DNA of 64,000 nt, from positions 372,001-436,000 of the forward strand of contig MCFH01000012.1 in NCBI GenBank assembly GCA_002104945.1, written 5' to 3'. The notes below the pieces were generated by a model, which did not search any database, was not told the origin of the DNA, and saw nothing but the letters and a program-made list of their open reading frames with translations. Every line of letters begins with the position of its first letter. Within the stretch, counting starts at the first letter, position 1. Both the position numbers and the translations under genes were made by a program. Origin of the DNA: Piromyces finnis finn. Taxonomy: Eukaryota; Fungi; Neocallimastigomycota. Shown piece after piece: positions 1 to 53,163 of this stretch.

Positions 1-2083
1 AAATGATTATTCTTTTAATCCAAAAAATGCTAATATAGATAAAACAAAATTAAAAAGAAGACACAGTTTTAATGATATATCTTACAACAAAAAGAAGAAA
101 ATATATCAAGAATATTTTAATTCAATAGTAAAAAGAAAATTAGATGACAACGACTATAAAATAAGTAATAAGAAATATAAAATTAATGAAATAATTAACA
201 ATTTACATGTTAAAAGACCTGGAAGTAAAATAGATAATAATAATGTTAAACGTGCTACAAACATTAATTATGATAGGGAAATTGCAAATATAAACATGGA
301 TTCTCCACTAACATTTAATGATGCTATAACAAGCAAATATAAAAATAAATGGATAGAAGCAATTAAAAATGAATTAAAAAATTTATACGATAACAATATT
401 ATGAATTTAGTTTCAAAATTACCTGAAAATAAAAATCCAATTAAAACAAAATGGGTTTTCACAATAAAACGTGACAGTAATAATGATATTGTAAAATTCA
501 AAGCAAGATTAGTAGCAAAAGGATATAGTCAAATAAGAGGAATTGACTATGAATTAACATTTTCTCCTACTCTTAGCATCGATAGTATTAAACTTATTAT
601 TTCATTATCAGCAAAATTTCATTGGAAAATATTTCAACTTGATATTAAAGCTGCTTACCTTAATGCAAAATTAGATAAGGACATATATGTTACAATCCCA
701 CAAGGAGACAAAAATTATGGAAAAGGATACTGGAAATTAAACAAAGCTTTATATGGCTTAAAACAGTCTGGACGTCAATGGAACGAAACAATTACTTTAT
801 TTCTTAAAAATAATGGTTTCAAACAACTGATTTCTGAACCATGCATTTTCAAAAGAGAACGAAATGGTATTACAACATGCATTATAGGTATATATGTTGA
901 TGATATGATCATCACTGGGAAAACGTTTGAAATTGAAAAAACTATTAAACTGATAAAAAACAATTTTAAAATATCAAATTGTGAAAAAATAAATTATTTA
1001 CTTGGAATAAAAATAGAAAATAATGGTTTTAAATATTCAATATCACAAACAAATTATATTGAAAACATTTTATCTAAATATAATATTAAAAATACTCGTA
1101 AAGCAAAAACACCATGCACAGGAGATAATATAAACGAAAATAAAACACCATTCGAAAAAACCACATACAAAAGTGTTTTAGGTTCTTTGATTTATTTATC
1201 AAAATGTAGCCGACCAGATATTGCCTATGCAGTAAATAAAGCAGCCAGAAATGCGGAAAATCCAACAATATCTGATTGGCATAAGGTAATGAATATCTTA
1301 AAATATTTAAATTATACTAAAAATTATAAAATCGAATATTCAGGAACAGGGGAAATTTTAGCTTATTCAGACTCAGACTTAGGAGGTGACCCAAAAGATA
1401 AAAAATCAACATCAGGTCACATAATTTTGATGGGAAATGATCCAATATGTTGGTCCTCAAGAAAACAATCTACAGTAGCTACTTCATCAATGGAGGCTGA
1501 ATATATAAGCACAACGGAATGCTCAAAAAAGGTATTATGGATAAGAAGCATATTACAAGAACTATTCAATTTTAAAAAACCAATAAAAATCTTCACAGAC
1601 AATTTATCAAGTAAAACTTCTATTGAAAATGGACAATTAAACTCAAAATTAAAACATATAAATATAAAATTTTATTTCAATCAAGACCACATTAAAAATA
1701 AAAGAATAATTTTAGAATACATCAATACAGAAGACATGTTGGCTGATGTTCTAACTAAAAATGTTAATGGACCAAAAATGAAGAAATTCTCAAACATAAT
1801 TTTCAAACATGCAGAAAATTAAGTTTGACAGGGGAATGTTAGAAATATTGAAAAACAAAGAAATATTTTTTTTAATATATATAATGAATTTAAATTAAAT
1901 TAAGATCGTTGTTAAAATATATTAAAGTATATTTTTTTACATCTCATTGTATTATTTTGACATGTATTATTAACAAGCCACAATTAGTATAAATATGATT
2001 GTAATTTTCCATTTTTGTAATACTTTGTAATTACCAAAATATAAAATATATTTTATTATTAAATAAAGTTTATTATTAAAAAC
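1..2083 (+). mobile_element. Ty1/copia LTR retrotransposon, 3' end including PPT and 3' LTR
   Basis: The pol stop at 1822 is followed by purine tract AGGGGAA (1830-1836) and TGTTAG at 1837. The LTR end is uncertain: AACA ends at 1975, 2083 and 2335, with AATAAA near 2061. Confidence 0.8.
2..1822 (+). CDS. Ty1/copia pol, 3' part (reverse transcriptase + RNase H); frame open to the window edge
   Basis: KARLVAKGYSQIRGIDY, QLDIKAAYLNA, LNKALYGLKQSGRQW, IYVDD, YSDSD, SSMEAEY, DN and ADVLTK motifs. I translated 2-295 in the same frame and found no stop. Confidence 0.96.
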   Translation, partial: NDYSFNPKNANIDKTKLKRRHSFNDISYNKKKKIYQEYFNSIVKRKLDDNDYKISNKKYKINEIINNLHVKRPGSKIDNNNVKRATNINYDREIANINMDSPLTFNDAITSKYKNKWIEAIKNELKNLYDNNIMNLVSKLPENKNPIKTKWVFTIKRDSNNDIVKFKARLVAKGYSQIRGIDYELTFSPTLSIDSIKLIISLSAKFHWKIFQLDIKAAYLNAKLDKDIYVTIPQGDKNYGKGYWKLNKALYGLKQSGRQWNETITLFLKNNGFKQLISEPCIFKRERNGITTCIIGIYVDDMIITGKTFEIEKTIKLIKNNFKISNCEKINYLLGIKIENNGFKYSISQTNYIENILSKYNIKNTRKAKTPCTGDNINENKTPFEKTTYKSVLGSLIYLSKCSRPDIAYAVNKAARNAENPTISDWHKVMNILKYLNYTKNYKIEYSGTGEILAYSDSDLGGDPKDKKSTSGHIILMGNDPICWSSRKQSTVATSSMEAEYISTTECSKKVLWIRSILQELFNFKKPIKIFTDNLSSKTSIENGQLNSKLKHINIKFYFNQDHIKNKRIILEYINTEDMLADVLTKNVNGPKMKKFSNIIFKHAEN

Positions 2084-13957: not shown

Positions 13958-16900
13958 TCTTGATTCTGGTTCATGATATCTTTTAAGAATTATTTTTAAA
14001 ATATTTTAATTTAATGAAATTTGATTCAATAATCTCCAACTATTCTAACTAAAATATTTATATACTACTACTACTACTACTACTACTACTAAAACTATAA
14101 TAAAATATATTTCACCAATGCTATCTATCAATAATGAATATTTTATAATATAAAAATTAAATTATATATATCACGAAAAAAAAAAAAAATTTATATATTA
14201 ATTACTAAAAGTATGGATTTTCTAATTTTTTTTTTTTAATATTATAAATCTATATGTTGTTTAATGTTATTCTTGGTGTATTTAATTAAGCTTCATAATA
14301 TGTATAGTGTAAAACAATTGAAGAGATAAATATGTATATATATGAAAAATATGATATTAGAATGTTAAAATTTTTTTTTTAATTCCGTTGTATTTTAATT
14401 AATGATTATCTTTACAAATATATAAAAATATATGTATCAGAAATTTATTTTTACATTTTTTATTATTTCATATAATACTTTTTTCATATCATCGTGTAAA
14501 AGTTTTAATTAATCCTTTGATTAATAGTCTTAAATGAAATAATTGATTAATAATATACCTTTAGAATATAAAATATAATAATTAATTATATATGTCAAAC
14601 AATATACTTTTTTTTTTTTATAATTAATTCACTAATAAAAGATAATATAAATTGAAAATGAAGATAAAAATAGACCAATACTTTAAAAGTATTAAAAGAC
14701 AATAGTGTTTTTTTCACTACTAAATTTCCTAAAGAATGTTAATACGCTTTAGAGACACTAAACCTTCTTTTTCATTATTTATAGCATTGTAGTTAAACGA
14801 TAATTCAGAAAAAATATTGTATAATCTTTACAAAACTTTATCTGGACTATAATTCTATTTACCAATTTTAATAAAACTCTCTTAATTTCAAATATCAACT
14901 CAAAATGTATTTCATTAAAAATAAAACAGTCCTTATACGAGTTTCCCGCCGTTTTTGAAGTAATTTTTCACATTAGAAAATAATTTATTATACATATATT
15001 TTTACAGCCAGCATTTTCTTTTCACCTTAATAATTAATGTATATCCATATCCTTTTTACAATCAATAATAAAGGACAAGTCTTTTAGTAATAACCTCAAA
15101 CATTAATTTTTTGTGAAATTTCAATGCTTTAATTAAAATAGGTTAATTAGTTCACACTATAATGACTTTTATTTATACCGCAATCAAGTTTAATCAATTC
15201 TTTATAAAATAATTTAATATATTCATATTTTATATGTGTATTTTCCTTATTTATCATTGTTAATTTTCTTTATTTTTTTAGGATTTACATTGTATAACCA
15301 ATTTCATTTATTAGATATTTATAATCTTTTTCGTTTTTATTTACACGCCTTAATAAAAGATTTATTTTGTAGTTTCATTATTATTAAAAAAATAAAATAA
15401 AAAATGATATTGGCGCTTGTAACAATTATACAGAGCACAATAAAATTAATAATTACGTTACGTTACGTTAATTATTACATTTTAAAAATAGATCAAACTT
15501 TAATTACTATTTTTTAACCCATTTAATAAAACAAAACTATCCTAATATTGAAAAGGCACAAAGTAAAAGTATATACATGTATCTATATATTTGCAATACA
15601 AAATTAATAATGCTTAAAACTTTTATCAATGCATCAATGTATATACAAAACTTTAAAATAATTTATTAGCAATATAGTACCACCAACAGAATAGTATACT
15701 GAGTTTATACAATATATAATGTAATTCTTAAAATCTTATTGCTTCAAATGTTTTATTTCCTGAACCAGATTATATGAAAAAGTGTATAATAACTTAAAAG
15801 ATAAAAGAACAATCATTTAATAATAATAATGGCAAACATAACTTTTTATATTTTTTTTATTACATTTATAAAAAAGATAATTATTTTATATTTAATTAAA
15901 CCAAATTAAAACGTTTTAACATCTTATACCCTACTTTTTTAAATATATATACATACCTATTCATTAAATAGTTTTGTAATATAAGATATGTGCTTTAATT
16001 AAATGCTAAAGATAGTATGAAACAATATTATTATGTACTTTATAAATAAATAAAAAAGAAATAAAGGACCAAATTAAAATAAATATTAAGGAATATTGCT
16101 AAGAATTGAGGAAAAAAAAAAAGTTTTTTCATTGCCCAGTAAGCTAATGAAATCCATTACTTTTAATTCTTAGTTAAAATTGGCATATATTCATTTTCAT
16201 TATTAGTAAATAAAAAACCTAACCCACATCAATTTTTGATCTACATTTCAATACATTTTTAACTTTTAAATACAAAATGTATTTGTGATACATTCATTTC
16301 AAAAAAATAATTTTTATTTTAAATTTTATAATATTATATTTATTTTTAAAAATTATTTCTGATATGATTGGTTATAAAATATCCAATCAATAATACTATT
16401 TATATATATTTTTAAATTTAAATTTAATATATTATAATATATATGAATATTATATATTACATCATATATTATGTTTTTTTTAATTTAAAATTTTAAAATA
16501 ATAATTATTATAATAAATTAAATTTTGTATAAAAAATTTTAAATTTAATAAAAAGTATTTTTAAAGAGAATCCTAATTATTATGATGTCGTCGTTGAGGT
16601 GTGGTGGTGTGGTGTGTGTGTAGTAGGAATTTTTTTTATATGGTTAATCATTTGCTTTTTTTTTTTTTTTTACTATCTTTTATAGTATCAATGTAATAGT
16701 ATGGAGAATATAAAATTATTTTATTGAAAAATAGTTAGGATTAAATTTTTATAAATAATTTATTTCAATACATCATATATTATAATATATCATAATAAAT
16801 TGTAGAATATAATCTAATATATTGAACATTTTTATTATATTATTATTTGTCAATTTAATATTAATTTTTTTTTTTTTTTTAAATTTTTTTAATTTCTTAT

Positions 16901-17055
16901 TTTTACATATTTTTTATTCTTTACAAAATAATATAGATTTCAATAATTGGGAATTGAATTATTGAAAAATCATCAATTTTATAATAAAGATTTGAATATT
17001 TGTCATCGTTTTATTTTTTTATCCATATTTAATTTAATAAAAATCAATAATCAAA

Positions 17056-19301
17056 ATGCTTGTTTTATTTGAAACTCCAGCTGGTTATGCCTTATTTAAA
17101 ATGGCCGATGAAGGTCAACTTAAGAATGCTGATGATATTTGGAAGAACTTTGAAACCCCAGAAGCAGCAAACAAGATGTATGTTATTTAATTTTTTTTTA
17201 TAACATTTTTTATTTAAATTTAAAAAAGATTAGATTGGTGTTGATTTCTTTGTATTTAGCTACTTGAATATACTTTTAAATTATAATTCTTTTATATCTA
17301 TCTTTTATTCGTTCTTTTTATTTTTTACTTTTTATTTAATATCCATAAATCTATACTTTTATTAAAAGTAAAGATCTATAGAATTTAAAATAAAGTGAAA
17401 AAGGAAGAAAATAAAAGTGACAATACAAAAGAAAAATATTTTAAAATATATAATGATAATGGAGCTAAAGGAAAGAAAAAATTTTTTTTAAAAGAAAAAA
17501 AAAGCATGGATAATTTTTTTAGATGCAAATAAAATATGAGATAAAAAAGAAAGAAAAAAAAAGGGAAGAGAATTTATATGGAATTTGAATTTTTTGAATT
17601 GATTATAAAAAGTAGTAAAAAGATTTGTATCTCAATTATCAGTGAACTTTTTATTTAAAGAAATATTGTGGAATATTGATTGATTAATGAATTATTCTGT
17701 TTCAATATGAAAATTACATTAAAATAGTTTAAAGCTTAAGGCTTTCTCCAAGTTTGAAAACACCACTGATGCCCTTTCAGCTGCTACTGCTATTGTTGAA
17801 GGAAAGATTTCAAAGAATTTAAAGAAATTCTTACAAACTGAATTAACTGAAAAGGATTTAAAAGAAAAGTTAGCTGTTTCTGATTCCAAATTAGGTAAAT
17901 AATTTGAAGAAATATTTAATTTTTGATGACCACTTTTTTTTTAAAAGTGTACTAAATAGAATTTTATATAATTTTATATAAATTTAATATTCTTTTAATT
18001 CTATTATCAAAAAAAAAAAAAACAAATATTCACTGGGAAAAATAATGAACCATCAAATATTATTGAAATAAATCAATGGATTAATTAATAAAGGTAACGC
18101 TATTGCTAAGAAGCTTAATATTCAAGTTGTTTCTGACAATGCTGTCTTTGAATTAATGCGTGGTATTAGAACTCAATATGAAAGTTTAATTACTGGTATG
18201 AAGAAGGAAGATATGAACGCTATGGTTCTTGGTTTATCTCACTCTCTTTCTCGTTACAAGTTAAAGTTCTCTCCAGATAAGGTTGATACTATGATTATTC
18301 AAGCTATTAGTTTATTAGATGATCTTGATAAGGAATTAAACACTTACGCTATGAGAGTTAAGGAATGGTACGGATGGCATTTCCCAGAAATTGCTAAGAT
18401 TATTGTTGATAACTTAGCTTATGCCAAGACTATTAAGGCTATGGGTTTCCGTACTAATGCTCAAACCACCGATTTCTCTGATATTCTTCCAGAAGAACTT
18501 GAAAAGGAAGTTAAGGAAGCTGCTGAAATTTCCATGGGTACTGAAATTAGTGAAGAAGATATTGAAAACATTCACCTTTTATGTGACCAAATCATTTCTC
18601 TTACTGAATACCGTACTCAACTTTACGATTACTTAAAGAACCGTATGCAAGCTATTGCTCCAAACTTAACTACCTTAGTTGGTGAATTAGTTGGTGCTCG
18701 TTTAATTTCTCACGCTGGTTCCTTATTAAACCTTGCTAAGCACCCAGCCTCTACTGTTCAAATTTTAGGTGCTGAAAAGGCTTTATTCAGAGCTCTTAAG
18801 ACTAAGCACGATACTCCAAAGTACGGTCTTATCTACCACGCTTCTTACGTTGGTCAAGCTGGTCCAAAGTTAAAGGGTAAGATGGCTCGTACTGTTGCCT
18901 CCAAGGCTGCTATCTCTGTCCGTTGTGATGCTTTAGGTGACAAGGATACTAAAGAAATTGGTACTGAATTACGTAACAAGATTGAAAACCGTCTTCGTCA
19001 ATTAGAAGGTCGTTCCGTTCATACTGCCAATGCTGGTGCTGCTGGTGGTAAGGCTAAGCAAAAGAAGTTCAACTTTGTTTCTTCTTCCTCATACAATGCT
19101 GCTGCTGATTCTACAATAAAGCCAGAAGAACCAAGTAAGAAGAGAAAGGCTGAAGAAGAAGTTGACAATGAAGTTGAAGTCAAGAAAGAAAAGAAGGAAA
19201 AGAAAGAAAAGAAGGATAAGAAGGAAAAGAAAGAAAAGAAGGACAAGAAGGATAAGAAAGAAAAGAAAGACAAGAAAGAAAAGAAATCCAAGAAGGATTA
19301 A
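17056..19301 (+). CDS. NOP58: Nucleolar protein 58 (box C/D snoRNP); join(17056..17177,17728..17894,18094..19301)
   Basis: [15 protein letters not shown] start, [65 protein letters not shown] and a KKE/D tail. The junctions keep the frame. Confidence 0.96.
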
Positions 19302-29173: not shown

Positions 29174-32598
<3,425 letters not shown>

Positions 32599-33772: not shown

Positions 33773-36085
33773 TTAAAATAATTTAGAAACTTGATAAAAT
33801 AGAGCTGATACTATCCACGCTAGAACTGTAGTATAAACAGCTGTAAATCCAGCCCATTTCCATCCTGCTTCATGATTAATAGCAACTATAGTTGCTATAC
33901 ATGGGAAATAGAATAGAGTAAATAACATGTAGGCATAAGCTCCTCTGGCATCAAGATCGCCACTATCCTTAAGTTTGACAGATAAGTTATTTGCTAATGA
34001 TTCTTCATCATCTTTTTCTTCTTCTTCTTGTACATTCTCAGCATCCTCTTCACTGCTATATAAAATATTCAAGGTAGACACTACAACTTCCTTAGCACCA
34101 ACACCTGCTATTAAACTAACATCCATCTTCCAATTGAAACCTTGTGGAACAAAGACGGGTTCAATGAAATGTCCAATAACACCAAGACAGGTTTCTTCAT
34201 TTTTTAAATGTCCCTTTTCATCTTTATGATTTGGATAGTTGGAAAGGAACCAAATAACAATACTTGCTGCTAAAATGACCGTTGCCATTTTTTTCAAGTA
34301 TTGTTTTGCTCTTTCCCAGGCGTGTTTTAAAACATTAAGAAGGGATGGTAATCTATATTCAGGAAGTTCCATAATAAAGTTCATTTCCTTTTCCTTGACA
34401 AGGAAAAGACTAAATAATTTAGCTAAAATTAAAGCAACAATAATACCTATAGCATAAATAGAGAAAATAATAAGAAAAGAGTAACCGGGGAAGAATACTC
34501 TACATAAAACATTATATACTGGAATTCTAGCAGAACAAGAGAACAAGGAAGCAACAAGAATAGTAACAACACGATTCTTTCTGTTTTCAATAGAACGTGT
34601 AGACATAATGGCTGGTACATTACATCCAAAACCACAAATCATTGGAATAAAGGATTTACCGTGAAGGCCAAAGGCTCTCATAATACGATCTAAAATAAAA
34701 GCAGCACGTGCCATGTAACCACTGTCTTCCATGATGGAAACACAAACATACAAAATAAGAATGTTTGGAAGGAAAACAATGACGCCACCAACACCACTTA
34801 TAATACCATCAACCAGTAAATCTTTGAACCATCCATCTGAGAGAGCATTACCAACAACTTCTCCTAACCATTCAAATAAGGCTTCAATCCATCCCATAGG
34901 ATAGTCACCTACCTTGAATGTGAGTATAAAAAGAATAAGAATGACAATACAAAAGATAGGGAAACCAAGCCATCTATTAGTAACAATAGAATCAATTCTT
35001 GCAGTGAGTTTACCCTTTCCATTCTTACTTCTTGTATAGATGCCTTCTAACATTTGATTGATAAAGGCATAACATTCTCCGGTATTCTTGGTATCAATAA
35101 GGGCGGTTTGTTTATTGAATTTTGGTGTGGTATCCTTAACCGCTAAAACCTCATCAAATAATTGTTTTAAACCCTTACCATAATTAGAAACGGTTGGCAT
35201 AAATTTCATGCCAAAACGTTTACTTAATTCTTCATGATCAATGGAATCGCCTCTCTTTTCCAATTCATCATACATATTTAAGGCACCAACCATTGGAACA
35301 CCAGCTTTTTGAGCCTGTAAAGTTAAGTAAAGGTTACGTTCCAAATTGTTGGAGTCAAGTACATTAAGGATGACATCAACCTTATTATTTTGTAAATAAT
35401 CTTCAACATACTTTTCTTCAGGAGAATAAGAAGCCAATGAATATGTACCTGGTAAATCCACGAGTTTAACCTTACAACCATTGTGAATAAATGTACCTTC
35501 TTTTGAATCAACGGTTACCCCACAATAATTACCTTCCTTTTCGTGACCACCACTAATATGATTGAAGAGGGTAGTCTTACCACAGTTTGGATTACCGATA
35601 AGAGCAACGGTAATCGTTTGACCATTCCATTTTCTATTACGTAAATTAGTGACAACCTTATTTTTCTTTTTTTTACACTCCTTTTCTTCTGGACAAAATT
35701 TACAGAAATTGGATATATTCTCTTCTTCTATTGTTTTAATCTCAATTTCAGAATGTTGACTATCATCATTTAATTTATCTGTTGTTTCAACTTTTACCGC
35801 CGCATTACCTTCTTCTTCTTCAATACAGAAAACACTTGCTGGACAAGTATCTTTTTCAACGGGTTCTCTTGAAACTTCAATATTTTTAGTTTCAGAACGA
35901 CGTAAGGTGACAGTCGTACCCATAATTTCATATTCCACTGGATCCATTAATGGCGCTTTCATGTGGTTATAAATTTTTTCACCACGTATGAAACCGATCT
36001 CTGAGAGTCGACGTGCAAATGCTTTATCGCCATTAACCTGCAATATGTAAGCCGATTCACCGATTTTTAAATCTGAAAGTTTCAT
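33773..36085 (-). CDS. feoB: FeoA-FeoB fusion ferrous iron transporter, copy 1 (770 aa, intronless)
   Basis: N-terminal FeoA (RRLSEIGFIRG..APLMDP), G1 GNPNCGKT, G2 GVT, G3 DLPG, SPEE, G4 NMYD, and transmembrane/gate motifs EDSGYMARAAF, GFGCNVPAIM, CSARIP, GAKEVVVST and LFYFPCIATI. Confidence 0.96.
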   Translation of the reverse strand: MKLSDLKIGESAYILQVNGDKAFARRLSEIGFIRGEKIYNHMKAPLMDPVEYEIMGTTVTLRRSETKNIEVSREPVEKDTCPASVFCIEEEEGNAAVKVETTDKLNDDSQHSEIEIKTIEEENISNFCKFCPEEKECKKKKNKVVTNLRNRKWNGQTITVALIGNPNCGKTTLFNHISGGHEKEGNYCGVTVDSKEGTFIHNGCKVKLVDLPGTYSLASYSPEEKYVEDYLQNNKVDVILNVLDSNNLERNLYLTLQAQKAGVPMVGALNMYDELEKRGDSIDHEELSKRFGMKFMPTVSNYGKGLKQLFDEVLAVKDTTPKFNKQTALIDTKNTGECYAFINQMLEGIYTRSKNGKGKLTARIDSIVTNRWLGFPIFCIVILILFILTFKVGDYPMGWIEALFEWLGEVVGNALSDGWFKDLLVDGIISGVGGVIVFLPNILILYVCVSIMEDSGYMARAAFILDRIMRAFGLHGKSFIPMICGFGCNVPAIMSTRSIENRKNRVVTILVASLFSCSARIPVYNVLCRVFFPGYSFLIIFSIYAIGIIVALILAKLFSLFLVKEKEMNFIMELPEYRLPSLLNVLKHAWERAKQYLKKMATVILAASIVIWFLSNYPNHKDEKGHLKNEETCLGVIGHFIEPVFVPQGFNWKMDVSLIAGVGAKEVVVSTLNILYSSEEDAENVQEEEEKDDEESLANNLSVKLKDSGDLDARGAYAYMLFTLFYFPCIATIVAINHEAGWKWAGFTAVYTTVLAWIVSALFYQVSKLF

Positions 36086-37273
36086 ACTGATTTTGTTATT
36101 TAACTTTGGATTAAATTTTTAAAAAAATAAATGATAATTTTAATATATATGTTCTCTTATAACATATATATTAAAATCTTTCTTTTGAAATTCAAATGAT
36201 TTTTTTTGTTTTTGGTTTTGTTTATTGATTTATACTTTCAATTTTCAATTTTTATATTTTTAATACTATTAAGAATTATTATTAAAAATCTTTTAAATTT
36301 TTTTTTTTTACCTTTTCCCTTTTAACAATGCCTTTCTTTTCCTTTTTTTTTTTATTTTTTATTTTGCTGTTTATTATTACTTTTTTTTTTCCTTTTTTTT
36401 TTTACTTTTCTTTCTTTTCACCAAAATTTCTTAATGGAAAGGAAAAAAAAAAAAAAGAAAAAATAAATATGAAAATATTAATAAAAAAATTGTTTTTTTT
36501 TTCTAGAATGAAAATATAAAATAATTTTATTGGATCAATATCCCATATATAAATAAAAAATTATCTATCAATCTAGTATAAGAAATAAAAAATAAATGAA
36601 TGAATCATTAAATAATAAATGAAGAAAATAACTAATTAATTAAATGAATGGATAATTAATTAACTAAATAAATTACTACGAATTCATTATTGAAAGGATT
36701 AGGATTAGTAAAAAAGGGATTTTTTAACAACAGCAATCTATCTATAATGTCAATATAGTATAATATATGAATTGAATAAATAAATAATATATTTGATTCA
36801 TTATATTCGTTCATACTATAAATATATTCTTCCATATATTATTAATATATGATGTAGAATCAAGGATGAATCTATCATTTAATATATGCTTTGCAATTTA
36901 AAATTCTATTCTACATTATACTGACAAATATATTATTTTTAATTAACAATATAAATTGCTTTGTGTGACATTCATTCTTAAAATAATTAATAAAAAAAAA
37001 TTAAAAAAAAAGTGCTGAATTTTAAAAGAGCGTTTTAGTTACCCTTTTATGGTACGGTACAGAGAAAAAATGATATAGGATGGAAGAAAGAAAAAGGTTC
37101 AAAGAACAGGCATAAATAACCTAATACTATTAAAAAATATTGTGTTTTTTATTTTTTAATGCTATAAAAGTATATTCTATTTTTAAATATATATATAATA
37201 TTATTTTAGTTTTGTAATGGCAATACTTTTAAAAAATATTTAAATATATCCTATGAATATTACCTTTGATAAA

Positions 37274-37750
37274 AAAATTGGTATAGGTAGGTATAATGAG
37301 TATAGAAAGCAAATTTAGTTGGTAGTAGTATTAAAATTGGTATAGGTAGGTATAATGAGTATAGAAAGCAAATTTAGTTGGTAGTAGTATTAAAATTGGT
37401 ATAGGTAGGTATAATGAGTATAGAAAGCAAATTTAGTTGGTAGTAGTATTAAAATTGGTATAGGTAGGTATAATGAGTATAGAAAGTAAATTTAGTTGGT
37501 AGTAGTATTAAAATTGGTATAGGTAGGTATAATGAGTATAGAAAGCAAATTTAGTTGGTAGTAGTATTAAAATTGGTATAGGTAGGTATAATGAGTATAG
37601 AAAGCAAATTTAGTTGGTAGTAGTATTAAAATTGGTATAGGTAGGTATAGTGAGTATAGAAAGCAAATTTAGTTGGTAGTAGTATTAAAATTGGTATAGG
37701 TAGGTATAGTGAGTATAGAAAGCAAATTTAGTTGGTAGTAGTATTAAAAT
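37274..37750. repeat. 59-bp minisatellite, 8 copies
   Basis: Unit AAAATTGGTATAGGTAGGTATAATGAGTATAGAAAGCAAATTTAGTTGGTAGTAGTATT. Copy 4 has a C>T change; copies 7 and 8 share an A>G change. There are no spacers. Confidence 0.97.
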
Positions 37751-38844
37751 AAATATAATGGTTAAAAAAAATATAATGCTTTAATTGTTCAATGGAAAAA
37801 ATTATGAATCCTTCAAATCGTTACAATAAAATTTTATAACTTTCTTCCAGTTATTTTAATGCATCCTATAGCCTTCGAGACATCTTTGTTTCTTTATACT
37901 AAAAAAGGATAGGGATAAAATAGATTTTTATAATTTATGTTGTGAGTTGTTAAAATAAAATAAAATAAAAAAAGAGTGTGTTCAATTTCTTTTGATTTAT
38001 TTTTTAAATATGTATTGTTTATTTTATTTTCTATTTATATTTTTGTTATTTTTTTTATGTATATTAATATGATGGTATATAGATATATATTTTTTTACAT
38101 TGTTGTATATTATTTATTTATATTTTTTTTGTTCATATTATGTATATAGGAATACTATGGTATAGTTATTATATATTAATAATAATTATAGAGTTTAATG
38201 CCGAATTAAAACCTAAAAAATATTTTTAATATATTTAGTTTATACAAAAGAATTCTTTTTTTTTTTTTTTTAAAAAAAAAAAAACTTAAATCGTCCATAC
38301 TAATACTATTTAATTAAAACAGAGTTCATCTCTTTTTTATATATATATTTATTTATTTAAATTATTAATTTTAAAATATATAATATATATATATTTTTTA
38401 AAAAAAAATATAGTTTAGGGATGGATAGATGATAAAATGATAAATAGATAGATATATTTTTTATTTTTTATGTAATTACTCTTTTATTCTGTAAAGAGTT
38501 AAAAAAAATAATTCAAGTTTAAAAAAATATTAATGATAAATTCAGTGATATTGATATTTTGTAAATTAAATTTATATGAATAAACTTCTTTTACCAATTG
38601 TCCTTAAATTAAATGATATTTTAAAATATTAATTTATACTATCTTTTTTTTTTTTTCAAAAAAAAAAAAAAGATTATTTCTCAGGTAGGCAGATATACTT
38701 TAAACGAAACTGAAATAAATAATAGGAAGAATGATGATATTAGTTAATAGATATTATGAAATAAAAAAAAATAGAAAATGCAACATTCTAAGGGAAATGA
38801 TGATCTACTTTTTTTTTCTTCTTCTATAATTTCAGTATAGTTGC

Positions 38845-41241
38845 TTAAAATAATTTGGCAATTCTGTAAAAGACTGCAGAAACTACCCAAGCTAATACTA
38901 ATGAATAGGTAACAACAAAACCGGCCCATTTCCAACCAGCTTCATAACCAATGGTGGCAATGGTAGCAACACATGGGAAGTAAAGTAAAGTGAATAACAT
39001 GTATGAATAGGCACCTATAGGATCAAGATCACCACTGGCTCTCATTTTTTCAGAGAGATTCTTGGCTTGAGCTTCTTCTTCATCTTCTTCTTCCTCTTCT
39101 TCTTCCTCCTTACCTTCACCTTCCTTTCCAGCTTCAGCTCCAGCATCATCACCAGCTTCTTCTTCTGGACCTTCATCTTCACCACCATATAAAATGTTCA
39201 AGGTGGAAACAACAATTTCCTTGGCACTTAAACCAGCTAATAAACCGACATCCATCTTCCAATTAAAACCTTGTGGAACAAAGACTGGTTCAATGAATTT
39301 ACCGACACGACCTAAACAACTGTCTTCAGTTTTGAAATTTCCATTTTCGTCTTCATGGTGTGGGAAGTAGGAAAGGAACCAAATAATTACACTAGCACCT
39401 AAAATGACAGTACCCATCTTTATTAAGTATTGCTTAGATCTTTCCCAGGCATGTTTTAAAACATTCCAGATGTATGGAATTCTGTAATCTGGAAGTTCCA
39501 TTAAATAGTTCATTTCCTTTTCCTTGACAAGGAAAAGACTAAATAATTTAGCTAGGATTAAAGCAATGATGATACCGACAACGTAGATAGAAAAGATAAT
39601 GATGAAAGAATAATCCGGGAAGAAAACCTTACAGAGAACACTGTAAACTGGAATTCTAGCAGAACAAGAGAACAAGGAAGCAACAAGAATAGTAACTAAA
39701 CGATTCTTTCTGTTTTCAATAGAACGTGTAGACATAATGGCTGGTACATTACATCCAAAACCACAAATCATTGGAATAAAGGATTTACCGTGAAGGCCAA
39801 AGGCTCTCATAATACGATCTAAAATAAAAGCAGCACGTGCCATGTAGCCACTATCTTCCATGATGGAAACACAAACATACAAAATGATAATGTTTGGAAG
39901 GAAAACAACAACACCACCGACACCACCAATAATACCATCAACCAGTAAATCTTTGAACCATCCGTCCTTCATACCACTATCTGAAATTAAACTTCCAAGC
40001 CATTCGAATAAGGCTTCAATCCATCCCATAGGATAATCACCAATCTTGAAGGTTAACCAGAATACAGCAAATATAATAAGACAGAAGACGGGGAAACCAA
40101 GCCATCTATTAGTAACAATAGAATCAATTCTTGCAGTGAGTTTACCCTTTCCATTCTTACTTCTTGTATAGATGCCTTCTAACATTTGATTGATAAAGGC
40201 ATAACATTCTCCGGTATTCTTGGTATCAATAAGGGCGGTTTGTTTATTGAATTTTGGTGTGGTATCCTTAACCGCTAAAACCTCATCAAATAATTGTTTT
40301 AAACCCTTACCATAGTTAGAGGCGGTTGGCATAAATTTCATGCCAAAACGTTTACTTAATTCTTCATGATCAATGGAATCGCCTCTCTTTTCCAATTCAT
40401 CATACATATTTAAGGCACCAACCATTGGAACACCAGCTTTTTGAGCCTGTAAAGTTAAGTAAAGGTTACGTTCCAAATTGTTGGAGTCAAGTACATTAAG
40501 GATGACATCAACCTTATTATTTTGTAAATAATCTTCAACATACTTTTCTTCAGGAGAATAAGAAGCCAATGAATATGTACCTGGTAAATCAATGAGTTTA
40601 ACCTTACAACCGTTGTGAATGAAGACACCTTCTTTTGAATCAACGGTTACCCCACAATAATTACCTTCCTTTTCATGACCACCACTAATATTATTGAAGA
40701 GGGTAGTCTTACCACAGTTTGGATTACCGATAAGAGCAACGGTAATTGTTTGACCATTCCATTTTCTGAAACGTAAATTAGAAAGGACATAACCCTTTTT
40801 CTTTTCACAATCCTTTTCTTCTGGACAGAATTTACAGAAATTTGGAGTAGCTTTTTCAATTTCTTCAGTAGTGGCATCTTCAATATCGATATTAACATCA
40901 GAGATATCAGTTGTTTTTTTATTACAACGGCAACTGCCTTCCTTTTTACCACTGCAGCAGTTACCTTCTTCTTGACCTAATGAGGTATAACTAGATGGGC
41001 ATTTAATTTTTTCAACAGGTTCCTTAGAAACTTCAATATTTTTAGTTTCAGAACGACGTAAGGTGACGGTCGTACCCATAATTTCATATTCCACTGGATC
41101 CATTAATGGCGCTTTCATGTGGTTATAAATTTTTTCACCACGTATGAAACCGATCTCTGAGAGTCGACGTGCAAATGCTTCTTCGCCATTAACCTGCAAT
41201 ATGTAAGCCGATTCACCGATTTTTAAATCTGAAAGTTTCAT
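38845..41241 (-). CDS. feoB: FeoA-FeoB fusion ferrous iron transporter, copy 2 (798 aa, intronless)
   Basis: Same motif set as copy 1, with a longer Cys-rich linker and a longer acidic loop. Confidence 0.96.
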   Translation of the reverse strand: MKLSDLKIGESAYILQVNGEEAFARRLSEIGFIRGEKIYNHMKAPLMDPVEYEIMGTTVTLRRSETKNIEVSKEPVEKIKCPSSYTSLGQEEGNCCSGKKEGSCRCNKKTTDISDVNIDIEDATTEEIEKATPNFCKFCPEEKDCEKKKGYVLSNLRFRKWNGQTITVALIGNPNCGKTTLFNNISGGHEKEGNYCGVTVDSKEGVFIHNGCKVKLIDLPGTYSLASYSPEEKYVEDYLQNNKVDVILNVLDSNNLERNLYLTLQAQKAGVPMVGALNMYDELEKRGDSIDHEELSKRFGMKFMPTASNYGKGLKQLFDEVLAVKDTTPKFNKQTALIDTKNTGECYAFINQMLEGIYTRSKNGKGKLTARIDSIVTNRWLGFPVFCLIIFAVFWLTFKIGDYPMGWIEALFEWLGSLISDSGMKDGWFKDLLVDGIIGGVGGVVVFLPNIIILYVCVSIMEDSGYMARAAFILDRIMRAFGLHGKSFIPMICGFGCNVPAIMSTRSIENRKNRLVTILVASLFSCSARIPVYSVLCKVFFPDYSFIIIFSIYVVGIIIALILAKLFSLFLVKEKEMNYLMELPDYRIPYIWNVLKHAWERSKQYLIKMGTVILGASVIIWFLSYFPHHEDENGNFKTEDSCLGRVGKFIEPVFVPQGFNWKMDVGLLAGLSAKEIVVSTLNILYGGEDEGPEEEAGDDAGAEAGKEGEGKEEEEEEEEDEEEAQAKNLSEKMRASGDLDPIGAYSYMLFTLLYFPCVATIATIGYEAGWKWAGFVVTYSLVLAWVVSAVFYRIAKLF

Positions 41242-44200
41242 ACTGATTTTGTTATTTAACTTTGGATTAAATTTTTAAAAAAATAAATGATAATTTTAAT
41301 ATATATGCTCCCTAAAACATATATATTAAATATAATAATATTATAATTTTTTTTTCTTTAAATTTTTTATTTTTTTTTTATTTTTTTACTTTATGGTTTT
41401 GAATGAATAATAAAAGAAAAAAAAATTAAACTAAATCTTGTTTATTTTATATGTTTTTTTTTTTTTTTTTTTTTAATTACACACAATTAATATATTTATA
41501 TTTAATAAACTTTATTAAATAGTGTTGTTGTTGCTTTTTTACCAACATTACATCGTGGTTAGGCAAATTCTTTTAGCTTAGTAAATTTTATTATTTTCCA
41601 TAAAGATTCAATTTTTAATTTATTTATCTCTATAAATAAATATAATCTAATATATTAGATGTTATAAATCAATACATTTTCCATAAAAAACAATATATTA
41701 TATTATTTAATAATGTAAATTTGTATTCCATATCAATTTCATTTAAATAACAAAAGAAAACAGAAAGATTAAAAATAAATAAATTCATATATTAAAGTAT
41801 AATGTAATATATATAAATTAATTTATTATATAATATAATTTTATATGATAAAAACTCCACTTGATTTTTATTTGTGGAGGAGTCCGAAGGATTGAATTGT
41901 ATCTTTTTTAATTTATTAAAATTTTCCTAATAATAACTAATCTAAGTAAATAAATACTATTTAAATAAATAAATAATTAATATTATTAAATAAATAGTCA
42001 AATAAATAATATTAAATGAATGAATAATTAATAAAATAAATAAATAAATAACCATTTCCCACGCTGTATATAGAGTGAATGAAAAACTATTACACTATGC
42101 AATTTTAATTTTAATGAAATGATGCCAAAGTAATAAATAGGAATAATACTATATAATACTGATTTAGTTACTCCAACTTTTTTTTTTTCCCTTATTTATT
42201 ATCTTTTGATTAAATAAAGAATATTATTCCAAAAGTAAGCTAATATTATATGCAATTAAGTCAACTCTATCCTTTCTTCTTTATCTTCTTCCTTATGATT
42301 AAAATACAGACTTGTTTTCTACATGATTGGTGAAACCAGACCGTTACAACAATTTAATTTATGGTTTTATGTTTAGGCCAGTGTATAAAGTTTAAAAACT
42401 TTAATTATTATTATTTCATATCAAAAACTAAAAAGATAACAATTAAAAGAGCAGTTGCTGTTTTGGTATTTATAATAATAGTAATTACATCGTCCTTTCG
42501 ATGTATATATTTATAAAAAAAGAAAGAGAAAGGATTGCTTTTCTTTAAATAAAGAATTTTTAATAACACTTTTTTACATTTCAAAGAGTTTTTTTTTTTT
42601 TATTTTTACTCTTATTATGGAAATAGGAAATAATAGAAATAGGCGTCTTTTTTTTTCTTTATATCTTATAAAGAACTTTTTTTTTTATATCCCTTATTAT
42701 TCCTTACAATTCACAACAATGAATGTAATTTTAAATAGTTTTATATAATTCATTCTTTTACACATATTTTTTTTTTTTTTGACTTTATATCACACTAAAA
42801 ATAATCGAAAATCTAACCATTATTTTACATTACAAATTTAAAGTTTTTTTTCCCCTTCCTAAAATATTTATTTTTTTATTAGAATAAAAAAAAAAACAAA
42901 ATAATTTTATCGCCTAAAGCTTCCTTAAAAATCGAATAATTGAATAAAGTTTAAAAACTTTTTAGATGGGAACAGATACAATACATCATTCAGAATTATT
43001 ATATAAAAAGAACCAGAATTTCCATTTCATTTATCTATTTTTTTTTAAAAAAAAAGTAGCGAAAAAGACATTTTCTTATTTAATAAAAATAGGTAACTTT
43101 TTTTCTTTTTTTAAAAAAATAAGTAACAATAAAATATATTTTTTAAAATAGGGGAAAAAAAAAAACATCAGCAGCTTCAACATAGCAAAATAATAATAAT
43201 AATAATAAATTAATTCAACCAACTCAATGATAATATTATTCATTCACCATAACAATTTAAAAATAGTAATAACAAACTAAATCCTATTCATTCACCATAA
43301 CACCTTTTAAAAGGACACTTTATTAAAATTGCTGAGTTAAAAAATTGACTAATTTAAAGTTTTCATTTTTAATTATTTTTTAATTATGGTAAATTTAACA
43401 TTTTAATGATAGTAAAAATTAACCAATAAAAATAAAGCATTTTAATATTATGGAAAAGGTAACAAATAATATAAAATCTAAAAATTATTGGTTGAAATCT
43501 GCGAAATTGAAATTTTATTTTTTAAAAAATACAAGGAAATATTTTTTATTATAACTTAAAATTGTAATATATAATTAAAAAGAAAACCATTAAAACTAAA
43601 CACTTTTGAAGAAAGGCATTCTAATGGGACTATTACCAAAACAACAACAACAACAACAACAACAACCAAATCAAGGATTCAATTGCTTGTTTCAATCGTT
43701 ACAATGATACAATCAGTCTTTCATTAGGAAAAATAATATAAAATAAAAAAATATTTAATATGTTTTATAAAATTTATATTAAATTACAACCAATAATATT
43801 AATATATAATTAATTAAAAAGAAATTGATCATTGGTAGGAAATTAGTTTTTAAAGGTGGAAATTCCCTCTTTTCATTTTAATTAAATTTTTCTTTGCTTC
43901 AAAGGTAAGTTTAAAAAATGTTTTTTTTTTAAATGTATAGTAAATTTATTAAAAAAAAAAAAAAGAAATTAAAATGTTATTTAGGCTTTTTTTTATTCTT
44001 TGGAAATTACACCAAAGAATCAATTTTAAATAATCAATATTATAAATGATAAAAAAAAAAAGTAATAACAACACCTACTAAAAATAAATAATTTTTTCTT
44101 AAAAAAAAAAGGTAAGAAATTATTATATTTTATAATGTATATATAAAAATAAAGAAATGTATTTATAAAGAAAAAAAAAGTAATCAAATAGATAAAATAA

Positions 44201-45666: not shown

Positions 45667-46440
45667 TTAATTTTTCTTTTCAATTTCAATAAAACCTTGT
45701 TGTTTTAATAATTCATAATCATTATTATATCTACCAGAATTGTAGGAGGCTGTATATAATTGATAAAGTCTTTTAGACCATGTTGTATCACGTTCATTAG
45801 AATTTCTTTCAGCAACATACTTTTTATATTGTTCATCATAACTATCAATATTAGAAGAAAGTTTACTGGTGTCATATTCTTCTTGGAAACACATGGCTTG
45901 TGAAGGTAATCTTGGTTTAATTCCTGGTTCTTCCTCTGGATAACCAACACATAAACCAATCATTGGAATGACATATTTTGGTAATTTTAATTCTTTAATG
46001 ACTTCAAGAGATTGAGAACGAATGGTACCAATTGGAACAGTACCAAGTCCCATAGATTCAGCAGCTACAATAGCATTATCTAATGCAATACCAACATCAT
46101 GGGCACCAACCATAACAATATCTAATTGACTAATATATTTTTCAGCAAATTCTTTGTCCCCTACTTTTTCAAAAGCAAGAGATGCACGATAATAATCAGC
46201 ACAAAAAACTAAAAATGCAGAACAAGATGCTATATAAGGTTGATTTAAATTTAATTTTGCAAGTCTTTCTTTTCTTTTTTGGTCTCTAACAACAATAATA
46301 CTAACTTGTTGTCCATTACACCAATTTGGAGCGGCTTGAGCGGCTTTAATAATAAGATCTAGTTTTTCATCTTCAATAGGTTGATTTTTATATTTACGAA
46401 TTGATTGATGTTTTAAAAGACTTTCAATCACTGGATTCAT
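45667..46440 (-). CDS. NfsA/Frp-family NADPH-dependent nitroreductase / flavin reductase (intronless, bacterial type)
   Basis: HQSIRKY, AAQAAPNWCNGQQVSIIVV, FLVFCADYYR, AAESMGLGTVPIG and GLCVGYP..KPRLP. The likely start is the MNPVIESL ATG at 46440. Confidence 0.92.
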   Translation of the reverse strand: MNPVIESLLKHQSIRKYKNQPIEDEKLDLIIKAAQAAPNWCNGQQVSIIVVRDQKRKERLAKLNLNQPYIASCSAFLVFCADYYRASLAFEKVGDKEFAEKYISQLDIVMVGAHDVGIALDNAIVAAESMGLGTVPIGTIRSQSLEVIKELKLPKYVIPMIGLCVGYPEEEPGIKPRLPSQAMCFQEEYDTSKLSSNIDSYDEQYKKYVAERNSNERDTTWSKRLYQLYTASYNSGRYNNDYELLKQQGFIEIEKKN

Positions 46441-47186
46441 ATTAATTATTATTATTTTTTTTTTTTTTAAACTATTCAATTATAATAATTATTTTATTTC
46501 TGCTTTTTTATTGGTATTAATTTATTTTTTTAATTATTATAAAATTTCATATTTCTAAATATAGAAATTTATTCATTTATTAAATGGAAGAAGAAGAAGA
46601 AAAAAAAAAGAAACTTTTAAATAATAAAAAGACAAACCATTTTTTATCTATTGTTTGGTATTGATAGATTTTTTTTATTATTTAACTTATCTATTATTTG
46701 GTTTATTATATTGGCGTTGTTATTTATCCAAGTATATGGTAATATTGCTAAATTTACATATGTTCTGAACTATCTTTTATTGAAAAAGTATTTTAAATAA
46801 AAGATAAAACTAACATTATAACCCTTTGAATATAAATATTTATAAAATGTAAAATGTAAAATGTAAAATGTAAAATGTAATTAAAATTTAAAGATTAAAA
46901 ATTTAAGATTTTTTATTTATTATTACTTTTAATTTATAATTTTTGAAAGAATAATAAAATGGACATTAGTTTTAACAAAAAAAAAAAAAAAAAAAAAAAC
47001 CCTAATATATATATAAATGTATATATAGTTTTATTAAAATAGCTACTTATAAAGATTATTATAAATACTCTCACTTTATGACATTATTGAAAATAAGATA
47101 AACTTCATATTATTACTTATTTAGAGAGTTTTAATTCTTTAAAATTTCAGTGCCGAGCCGAAATATGGAATTTCAAGATTTTTTAA

Positions 47187-51099: not shown

Positions 51100-53163
51100 A
51101 TGGAAAACTTCTTATCACTATATCAATTTATATATATATTCATATTATTCTTATTATTTACTTTTGTTGAAGGAAAAGATAATGTAATTAAAATCTTAAT
51201 TAAAAAACCAGATAAAATAGAATCATCATATATTTATGAAAAGCAAGAAATAATAAAGCAAAAATATAGAGAATTGACTCAAAATGATGAAGATCTTAAA
51301 AATTCACAATTAGAATTTATTTTTTGCCCAGGATCAGATACTGAAAAATCAAATTTCTATCAAGATTTATTTTTGAAAGATAAAGAATATAAAAATTATT
51401 TAAATTGCATTTCAGAACATATAAAAAACTCCAGTTGTGACTTATTGATTCTAGATGATAAATTTATATTTGGTGACATTGCTCAAATAGAAAATTATGC
51501 AATAAATAGACTATTTGGATATAAAAAAGTACATAGTAATTTCTTAGAGTTAAATAAATATATTAATCATAAAGATAGAGATATTTCTTTTCATGATAAA
51601 AGAATATTAGGTGAAGGAAGTTATAAGGGTAAAATTTACGGATTACCATTTGAAGTTGACTTTGATGTAATTTATTTTCATAATGACTCAACATATTTGA
51701 ATAATTTACCAAAGGAATTAATAAAATGGGAAAACTTATTGGATATTGAAAAATTCAAGAATGAAACAATATTTCAGAATGAAACAATATTTCAATATCA
51801 ATTAAATAATAGCTATTATAAAAGCCCTTTTAGTATAGCATTAGGTGATAATGATGAATTATTAAGCATTTTTACTGAATTTACTGGTTATGAATATGGT
51901 AAAGGTTCTGTTACAAATCCAGAAATTAAAATAACAGATTTATTATCTTCTGAGCAACATTTTTTTAATTTTAAAGAATTTATTATGCGATCTACAGGTG
52001 CAAGCCAAGAAAAATTAAATGAAATTTTGAATATTCATGCAGATAATGCATATAATTTATTTAAAGAAAGAAATAATCCTCTATATATAGGAAAGGCTTC
52101 TTATAACAAACGTATTTTTGAAAATAATAATGATAATGTATCAGCGCTATTGTTACCAATGGGTGTAACTGTAGTGACAGAAAAATTTGTAATTGTCAAT
52201 AATAAAAGCAATATAGACAAAGAGATATTAGCAAAAGTAGCTTTTAAACTGGCATCAAAAGAAATGCAATATTACAAAGCTGAAAAACTGGGTTGTATAC
52301 CAACTAATGTTAAATTTCAGAGTAATTATAATAATGCCCGTAATAGACAAGATGATTTTTTTATAGATTGTCCAATTAATAATACAACGTTTTGTAATAC
52401 AATAAAAAATATATATCCTATTAGTATTAAAAACAAATTCTTTAATGAAGCGTCTAGCTCAAGTATTATGGAGGTGAGAGATATTCTTCCACATGCTTTG
52501 CGATTATTTCTAATTAGTGGTGAGGCAAAGGCAATCGTAGAAACTTTTAAGAATAATATTGTCTTAAACACCTATAGTAATAATTATATGGAAACACCAT
52601 TTATCATCTTGTATAGTACTTTAATTGTCTTTGTTTTATTATCAATAGTTGTCATGTTATTTGTTTATAAATATAGAAAACATCCTTATTTGAAAATGAT
52701 TTCTCCTTGTATTTGCATATTAGCTATTTTAGGATTAGTATCTAATACTGTTTCTCTTCCATTTTATGGTCAATTCTCATCTTACACTATGTGCAAGGTG
52801 TGCTTTGTTTTGGGTATTATTATTAGAGATTTAATTTTTTTACCAATGTTTGTCATTATATATAGAATTTACTATATTTATTCAAATGAATCAAGAGTAA
52901 ATTTTGGTAAGAAATTGAATGATAAACGTTTATTTTCGTATATAGGAATCATAATGTTTGTTAATGTATCCATTGGTATTATCCTTGTAGTATTTAAGGA
53001 TTTCTATGTTATTAATATAAATTGTAATCATCGTCGTTATTTCAGAGGTGAATTTGAAGGTTCTATATACTATAGTTATATATATGTTGTATATTATTTC
53101 TTTATTGTAAGTAAAAGTTAAAAAAAATTAATATATATAAATTTATTTGTTTATAAACCATAC

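Follow-up and report, generated by a model that had tools for sequence, protein, structure and literature searches.

Feo, a transport system for ferrous iron (Fe2+), is regarded as prokaryotic. A stretch of 64,000 nucleotides (nt) of genomic DNA from the anaerobic fungus Piromyces finnis (positions 372,001–436,000 of contig MCFH01000012.1, 993,787 bp, assembly GCA_002104945.1; this whole stretch is called the window below) carries a tandem pair of genes that each encode a fusion of FeoA and FeoB, which raises the question of (i) whether these genes belong to the fungus, (ii) from where they were acquired and (iii) what they do. We find that the pair consists of real, intact and long-resident genes of bacterial origin that very probably specify, as predicted from their sequences, a working ferrous-iron importer. 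We consider it likely that both are functional chromosomal genes going back to one old transfer from Bacteroidales, followed by amelioration of base composition, duplication and gene conversion, and that their products import Fe2+, probably across the plasma membrane.

The core finding was already known, since Feo domains in Neocallimastigomycota were reported in 2019 and in 2022, and the novelty claimed in an earlier note on this DNA was overstated. A list of 40 Pfam families confined to anaerobic gut fungi includes FeoA and FeoB_C (PMC6712302, 2019). A later survey called four FeoA matches in Neocallimastigomycota unexpected and in need of validation, and left undecided whether they reflect transfer or ancient retention and whether FeoA and FeoB are separate genes (PMC8749426, 2022). 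At NCBI, 'ferrous iron transport protein B' is the name already given to the proteins of Neocallimastix californiae and Anaeromyces robustus. We found no phylogeny, donor or functional test of fungal Feo in the literature; neither the main texts nor the accessible supplements of two catalogues of horizontal transfers in anaerobic fungi mention Feo, and as far as these texts go, the published catalogues seem not to contain the transfer. Apparently new are the donor lineage and the structural characters that it shares with the fungi, the evidence that a single acquisition took place early, the history of duplication and gene conversion, and the corrected gene structure. For this genome, both questions of the 2022 survey receive an answer: FeoA and FeoB form one gene, and the trees and structural characters described below point to a single old transfer of a short-form Bacteroidales FeoAB.

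Structure and genomic setting of the two FeoAB genes

Both genes, which we call Feo1 and Feo2, lie on the minus strand. Feo1 (33773..36085) encodes 770 amino acids (aa) and Feo2 (38845..41241), the upstream copy of the pair, 798 aa; residue and codon numbers refer to Feo1 unless stated otherwise. Each is one uninterrupted, intronless open reading frame (ORF) with the Pfam order FeoA, FeoB_N, Gate (twice) and FeoB_C. FeoA (PF04023) occupies aa 1–72 in both copies and is fused in frame to FeoB within the unbroken ORF, as in FeoAB proteins of Bacteroidota. FeoB_N occupies aa 158–312 in Feo1 and 166–320 in Feo2, with positions 1–155 of the 156 profile positions matched (E = 7e-56 and 3e-55, respectively); the paired Gate domains score 147–149 bits and FeoB_C 60–68 bits. 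The NCBIfam equivalog model for feoB, TIGR00437, gives 585 bits for Feo1 and 586.5 bits for Feo2 at a cutoff of 315.65. ORF analysis, Pfam, TIGR00437 and alignment confirm the description, in the earlier note, of two complete FeoAB ORFs with intact GTPase and gate motifs. The two proteins are 78% identical.

In Feo1, the SH3-like FeoA domain (aa 1–72; 35870..36085) matches the FeoA domain of a FeoAB fusion in PDB 7r7b (E = 6.9e-14). It is followed by a linker (aa 73–157; 35615..35869) that is predicted to be disordered (predicted local distance difference test, pLDDT, <50) and that carries a CxxCx5C motif (aa 128–137; 35675-35704), by the G domain (aa 158–312; 35150..35614) and by the membrane domain (aa ~360–770; 33776..35008). 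The G domain, assigned from FeoB_N and the invariant alignment columns, matches solved NFeoB crystal structures by sequence (E = 1e-39) and by fold in searches of the PDB. Its motifs G1 (GNPNCGKT, aa 164–171), G2 (T191), G3 (DLPG, aa 210–213) and G4 (NMYD, aa 270–273) are intact in both copies, and the G5 region spans aa 297–305. The membrane domain, assigned from Pfam (Gate twice, FeoB_C) and from the helices of an AlphaFold2 (AF2) model, contains Gate 1 with GFGC (aa 485–488), SCSAR (aa 516–520), Gate 2 with AKEVVVSTL (aa 664–672) and YFPC (aa 726–729), and, by the AF2 model and motif coordinates, a disordered acidic loop (aa 679–702). AKEVVVSTL and QYLKKM, which the earlier note had singled out as Bacteroidetes-like, are both present in Feo1. 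In the AF2 model (mean pLDDT 73), FeoA, the G domain and the helical membrane domain (helices 374–769) are confident; residues 84–150 of the linker and residues 679–699 in the acidic loop are disordered.

The corresponding segments of Feo2, in its own numbering, are the linker (aa 73–165; 40747..41025) with its CxxCx5C motif (aa 136–145; 40807-40836), the G domain (aa 166–320; 40282..40746, by Pfam and motifs) and the membrane domain (38848..40137), in which Pfam, the Feo1/Feo2 alignment and motif coordinates place a longer acidic loop (aa 688–730). Four more cysteines (Cys 95, 96, 104 and 106) form an extra CC...CxC segment in the Feo2 linker that Feo1 lacks. Across an alignment of 49 fungal and bacterial sequences, the G1–G4 residues and the pore/gate cysteines C488, C517 and C729 are invariant; we take these three cysteines to be equivalent to the essential cysteines of P. 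aeruginosa FeoB.

Public gene models cut each of the two ORFs in two, giving a FeoA-only piece of 92 or 95 aa and a second piece of 446 or 426 aa with Gate and FeoB_C, and omit the linker and the entire G domain, although the DNA is one reading frame. Exact-sequence look-ups returned truncated models only and no record of the full-length Feo1 or Feo2 protein. In this genome, FeoA only appears to be encoded by genes of its own, an artefact of the way in which the models were split.

The base composition and the neighbourhood of the pair are those of resident genes. The window is very AT-rich, with ~13–25% GC in most 1-kb bins, and blocks of 34–38% GC at 34–36 kb and 39–41 kb coincide with the two Feo ORFs (34.5–36.5% GC, flanks 14.5–19.5%). 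Native exons of the window have the same GC content as the Feo ORFs (0.37) and a similar GC content at third codon positions (GC3): GC3 is 0.24 in Feo1 and 0.29 in Feo2, compared with 0.10–0.31 in native ORFs of the window and 0.55–0.75 in the most closely related bacterial genes. Neighbours in the window include a Nop-domain gene, a G-beta gene, a Rad60-SLD (Esc2-like) gene, ankyrin genes, a class C G-protein-coupled receptor (GPCR) and a copia reverse transcriptase; several of the adjacent gene models cover much longer stretches of DNA than is needed to encode their products and therefore contain introns. The nearest native neighbour, the Rad60-SLD gene (32077..32598, plus strand; 96 aa over 522 nt, PF11976), contains an intron, is convergent with Feo1 and lies 1.2 kb downstream of it. 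The intron-rich eukaryotic neighbours and AT-rich flanks noted earlier are thus real, and the Feo genes, which share a contig with native genes that have introns and whose base composition has been ameliorated, are by these criteria resident fungal genes.

Bacterial origin and age of the acquisition

We collected relatives by a word-based protein search and calculated two trees, one of 85 rows rooted on Gammaproteobacteria and a careful one of 37 rows. Some 30 proteins are 57–80% identical to Feo1 and Feo2, with Piromyces sp. E2, N. californiae and A. robustus as named sources and Piromyces sp. E2 as the closest named relative in the tree. The next group comprises proteins of ~704 aa that are 49–50% identical over their full length, followed by many Bacteroidales proteins of ~800 aa at ~42%. 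In the 85-row tree, the 30 fungal rows are monophyletic (support 99) and sister (99) to the ~704-aa clade, among FeoAB fusions of Bacteroidota; in the 37-row tree, both clades receive 100/100. A phylogeny with Bacteroidetes FeoB, which the earlier note had proposed as a check, therefore places the fungal clade beside a Bacteroidales-linked clade with a support of 99–100.

The sister-clade members are uncultured (P0032, P0033, P0035–P0038 and P0040), and their genes reside on ordinary bacterial contigs of 49–56% GC. YchF, encoded 2.9 kb from one of these feoAB genes, is 89% identical to YchF of Bacteroidales metagenome-assembled genomes (MAGs) and 82% identical to that of a Prevotellaceae MAG, and because of this contig-mate we assign the sister clade to Bacteroidales. 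Among the matches listed, a scan of species-representative genomes gave only relatives with 36–48% identity over the full length and no sister-clade species.

Two rare structural characters, each an independent link, are shared by the fungal and the sister-clade proteins. The spacing between P-loop and Gate 1 is 274–276 residues in fungi, 271–272 in the sister clade and 347–396 in typical Bacteroidota, and the connector between G domain and membrane is ~75 residues shorter in fungi and the sister clade than in typical Bacteroidota. A cysteine triad is found ~30 residues before the P-loop, as CxxCx5C in 29/29 fungal and as CxxCxxC in 7/7 sister sequences; most other Bacteroidota lack it. Composition cannot explain the grouping, since the AT-rich fungal and the GC-rich bacterial genes are biased in opposite directions. 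The sister placement together with the shared short connector and cysteine triad indicates horizontal transfer and not a relic of early eukaryotes: judged from these characters, Feo of anaerobic fungi is a horizontal acquisition from a Bacteroidales lineage with short-form FeoAB.

Short-form Bacteroidales FeoAB (~704 aa) resembles the fungal proteins in that FeoB carries FeoA at its N terminus, in the small distance from the G domain to the membrane, in the position of the cysteine triad and in having a P-loop Cys. It differs in that the fungal linker is two- to six-fold longer, with CxxCx5C in place of CxxCxxC-His, that an RKWNG stretch is conserved in the fungal proteins and an acidic loop is present in their membrane domain, and that the fungal genes stand on eukaryotic chromosomes with a GC3 of 0.15–0.32 (Bacteroidales 0.55–0.75). 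FeoAB of the Bacteroides/Prevotella type (~800 aa, with the FeoA of PDB 7r7b) has the same fusion order, G and Gate motifs and pore cysteines and is 40–45% identical to the fungal proteins; unlike these, it contains the PF17910 domain, a connector ~75 residues longer and no linker cysteine triad. We found no published description of the compact short form. As side observations, two uncultured Bacteroidales loci (L081:10001-12115 and L083:10001-12112) encode compact FeoAB of 701–706 aa with a CxxCxxC-His linker and no PF17910, and a short connector together with a linker rich in Cys is likewise seen in proteins from Alloprevotella and Paraprevotella MAGs (L005, L008).

The earlier note had suggested checking for presence across Neocallimastigomycota: intronless tandem FeoAB pairs are also present in the independent assemblies of Piromyces sp. 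E2 and A. robustus, and N. californiae has a single copy on a 1.5-Mb contig. The A. robustus pair (759 and 801 aa) is located at L093:9878-12157 and 16225-18630; the public 718-aa protein of this species is without the first 41 residues of the 759-aa ORF. The upstream copy of Piromyces sp. E2 (L089:5143-7906) is broken by runs of N, with a FeoA fragment called on the opposite strand beside it, which looks like an assembly or annotation problem and not biology. Comparison of the flanks with the E2, N. californiae and A. robustus loci gave ankyrin-repeat matches only, which do not amount to usable synteny; the E2 locus is full of gaps.

The two deepest fungal-side sequences are transcript-sized contigs of two adjacent runs from 2023, with ends of 7–15% GC that finish in A-runs and with the fungal linker motif. 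Protein from feoB of the tortoise gut fungus Astrotestudinimyces divisus has been detected by mass spectrometry, at 6.2e7 in the biomass fraction and at zero in the cellulose-bound fraction (PMC10978972, Dataset S5), and the Astrotestudinimyces lineage is dated to 104–112 million years ago, before ruminants (PMC10978972). The simplest reading that these sequences suggest is a single early acquisition, before the radiation of the known Neocallimastigomycota. An acquisition that predates ruminants makes a rumen donor an anachronism. Of the rumen Bacteroidetes donor proposed in the earlier note, Bacteroidetes is upheld by the sister clade and its YchF, and the rumen is not supported, in view of the deep transcript-like members and the age of Astrotestudinimyces.

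Duplication, gene conversion and selection

In the 37-row tree, Feo2 groups with the upstream copy of Piromyces sp. E2 (97/98) and Feo1 with the downstream copy (87/90). Since the copies pair in the same order, the duplication must have preceded the separation from Piromyces sp. E2. A further, older duplication follows from the position of the two A. robustus copies in different deep clades. Judged from these groupings, tandem duplication has happened more than once within the fungi. The sequence of transfer and subsequent duplication postulated in the earlier note holds as an order of events, and what does not hold is a simple recent event, as the duplication predates the E2 split and was overlaid by gene conversion.

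Synonymous divergence (dS) between Feo1 and Feo2 alternates along the genes between near-identity and values of 0.74–1.16. It amounts to 0.022 in codons 1–70 (tract 1), 1.16 in the linker (codons 71–159), 0.050 in codons 160–375 (tract 2), 0.74 in codons 376–440, 0.068 in codons 441–520 (tract 3) and 1.11 in codons 521–770. Tract 1 covers the 5′ end with FeoA together with ~90 nt upstream of the ATG (Feo1 35876..36175; Feo2 41032-41331), tract 2 extends from the G domain to the first membrane helix (Feo1 34961..35608; Feo2 40093-40740) and tract 3 contains Gate 1 (Feo1 34526..34765; Feo2 39655-39894), all on the minus strand. The three tracts are 97–100% identical, third positions included, with longest identical runs of 268 and 224 nt in tract 2 and of 147 nt in tract 3. 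The ~90 nt upstream are 95.6% identical between the copies, and the 3′ flanks are unrelated.

The G-domain segment of Feo1 (tract 2) has a dS of 1.01 to its Piromyces E2 orthologue and of 0.050 to Feo2, and in segment trees Feo1 and Feo2 are sisters in the G-domain segment only (97/99), while the C-terminal segment groups each copy with its respective orthologue. A similar mosaic is found in the A. robustus pair, which is near-identical in codons 1–60, 462–521 and 562–601. We conclude from these alignments and segment trees that the tracts result from gene conversion within the tandem pair. Constraint on synonymous sites may also account for some of the identity at the 5′ end, because dS to the E2 orthologue is only 0.20 there. 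Throughout Feo1 and Feo2, the ratio of nonsynonymous to synonymous divergence (dN/dS) is 0.05–0.37, showing that both copies are under purifying selection. Between the copies, dN is 0.39 in the linker and 0.17 in the C-terminal pore half.

Predicted function, alternative explanations and neighbouring features

Model fungi take up iron through Fet3/Ftr1, Fet4 or NRAMP, families unrelated to Feo, of which Fet3 depends on O2. In the anoxic gut, iron is ferrous and an O2-dependent ferroxidase cannot work. The fungal Feo proteins would have the same role as Fet3/Ftr1, Fet4 and NRAMP, the entry of iron into the cell, and would provide a simple explanation for iron uptake by a strict anaerobe without an O2-dependent ferroxidase.

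In the history that we favour, one ancestral short-form FeoAB, with a truncated helical connector and a cysteine-triad linker, passed from a Bacteroidales bacterium to the fungi. Thereafter the gene lost its bacterial base composition, lengthened its linker to 85–190 residues with the invariant CxxCx5C retained, and gained the acidic loop. Ongoing conversion homogenizes FeoA together with the 5′ end, the G domain and Gate 1; the linker has diverged, as has the C-terminal pore half. The two genes are presumably expressed in P. finnis. We expect the N-terminal 360 residues to be cytosolic and the first membrane helix to act as signal anchor, with the plasma membrane as the most likely site and endomembranes as a less likely one. 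The nucleotide-bound G domain, aided by the fused FeoA, would gate a cysteine-lined pore that admits Fe2+, the state in which iron is soluble under the anoxic conditions of the gut, without an O2-dependent ferroxidase/permease. An Fe2+ pore gated by a nucleotide-binding G domain is the current view of bacterial Feo (PMC8749426).

With canonical FeoABC of E. coli, Klebsiella and Vibrio cholerae, the fungal proteins share the G domain, which is 37–46% identical to solved NFeoB structures and folds in the same way. Canonical FeoB and the fungal proteins both have the P-loop Asn, equivalent to the well-studied N11 in NFeoB of S. thermophilus, and the Thr of switch I. One position in G5 is Thr in strict GTPases (Klebsiella T151) but Asn in the fungal proteins, as it is in the promiscuous V. 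cholerae protein (N150); the Ser that V. cholerae has two residues before N150 is missing from the fungal proteins. Unlike the canonical system, the fungal one has FeoA fused, no FeoC and a truncated GDI/helical domain.

A more far-reaching version of a eukaryote-adapted FeoAB is doubtful when taken as a whole. In this version, the CxxCx5C linker, with metallothionein-like CxC runs in some paralogues, would serve as a metal or redox sensor that replaces FeoC and the GDI domain, the paralogues would form mixed oligomers or split Fe2+ and Mn2+ between them, and recurrent conversion, in at least two genera, would keep the FeoA and G modules matched while linker and pore half diverge. The cysteine triad of the linker by itself is, from its conservation, a candidate metal or redox sensor.

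Several points weigh against a functional Fe2+ importer of the described history. A literature search gave no transport, nucleotide-hydrolysis, localization or iron-regulation data for any eukaryotic Feo, in agreement with the earlier note, which knew of no functional description. Four runs from three studies hold 55–73% of the sampled words of the 8.4-kb stretch comprising both genes and the spacer; these runs are only guessed to be RNA, and 56% of the stretch is coding. The two deepest fungal-side sequences are assigned to tortoise gut fungi by inference, and the base of the Bacteroidota is not resolved in the 85-row tree, at a level below the node that joins the fungi to their sister clade. 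Sequence and fold searches of the PDB matched soluble NFeoB and FeoA domains only and offered no full-length FeoB against which to check the pore. PF17910, the helical GDI/S domain that leads from the G domain to the membrane in typical Bacteroidota FeoB, has no match in any fungal or sister-clade protein. Its absence does not exclude membership in FeoB, as the short form also occurs in some bacteria, but with a truncated GDI domain and a connector shortened by ~75 residues, gating may differ from that of the studied E. coli-type proteins.

Two alternatives concern the origin of the genes. Bacterial contamination or a chimeric assembly would account for intronless ORFs of a bacterial family with a GC content above that of their flanks, but it is barely credible and we rejected it: composition is native-like down to the GC content of the exons, the AT-rich flanks are of fungal type on a 994-kb contig, orthologous intronless genes exist in three other independently assembled species and the nearest bacterial protein is only ~50% identical. 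Of the words sampled from the two genes and the spacer, 87% occur in one DNA run, although this run may be the source sample. Ancient vertical inheritance, in which Feo would be a 'living fossil' that goes back to the ancestral form of eukaryotic G proteins, is a possibility raised by the 2022 survey (PMC8749426). It is highly improbable and was likewise rejected, because the fungal clade is sister to one particular Bacteroidales lineage and shares its derived fusion, short connector and cysteine triad, and because, in a reported comparison with chytrid relatives, only anaerobic fungi had the Pfam families (PMC6712302).

The other two alternatives accept the transfer and differ in function. 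One or both copies could import Mn2+ or another divalent metal, or the copies could form mixed oligomers with distinct regulation. In Porphyromonas gingivalis, one of two FeoB paralogues reportedly imports Mn2+, and in P. finnis the copies diverge where specificity or sensing could reside, in the linker with the CC...CxC segment of Feo2 and in the C-terminal pore half (dS 1.1), with the cytosolic modules held identical by conversion. To our knowledge, no residue is known to distinguish Fe2+ from Mn2+ specificity, neither copy departs from the invariant pore cysteines or Gate motifs, and a dN/dS of 0.15 in the divergent half is plain purifying selection; we regard a different metal or a division of labour as unlikely, even though Feo derivatives that transport Mn2+ have been discussed (PMC8749426). 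Alternatively, the proteins could reside in the hydrogenosome, supplying Fe2+ for the assembly of Fe–S clusters and [FeFe]-hydrogenase, or in the vacuole or endosomes, releasing stored iron. Hydrogenosomes have a high iron demand, transport from the vacuole lumen to the cytosol is topologically equal to uptake from outside, and the biomass fraction to which the Astrotestudinimyces protein was confined does not separate membranes. Import into the matrix, however, would need the 360-residue N-terminal part inside the organelle, and residue 1 of both Feo proteins aligns with residue 1 of bacterial FeoA; the lack of an N-terminal extension and the three acidic residues among the first 20 argue against an organellar presequence. 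The hydrogenosomal location considered in the earlier note is accordingly disfavoured, and an organellar transporter of either kind is distinctly improbable. Import of Fe2+ at the plasma membrane remains the reading that we prefer, and the compact, intronless and long-conserved eukaryotic FeoAB is well suited to expression and structural work.

Further features of the window were recorded beside the pair. The extended GATA-type site of iron repressors, ATCWGATAA, has 3 matches in the window (2.96 expected), none of them near the Feo genes. The spacer between Feo1 and Feo2 shows a strong G-over-C skew (0.57) at 37001-38000. A copia-type reverse transcriptase ORF (296-1822, plus strand; RVT_2, E = 6e-65) opens the window, and a 673-aa ORF (51100-53121, plus strand) ends in a seven-helix domain of class C GPCRs (7tm_3) after a large N-terminal part without Pfam match. 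At 4.4 kb upstream of Feo2, an uninterrupted ORF of 270 aa (45667-46479, minus strand; GC3 0.10) belongs to the nitroreductase family (PF00881, E = 6e-22) and may be another intronless gene of bacterial type.

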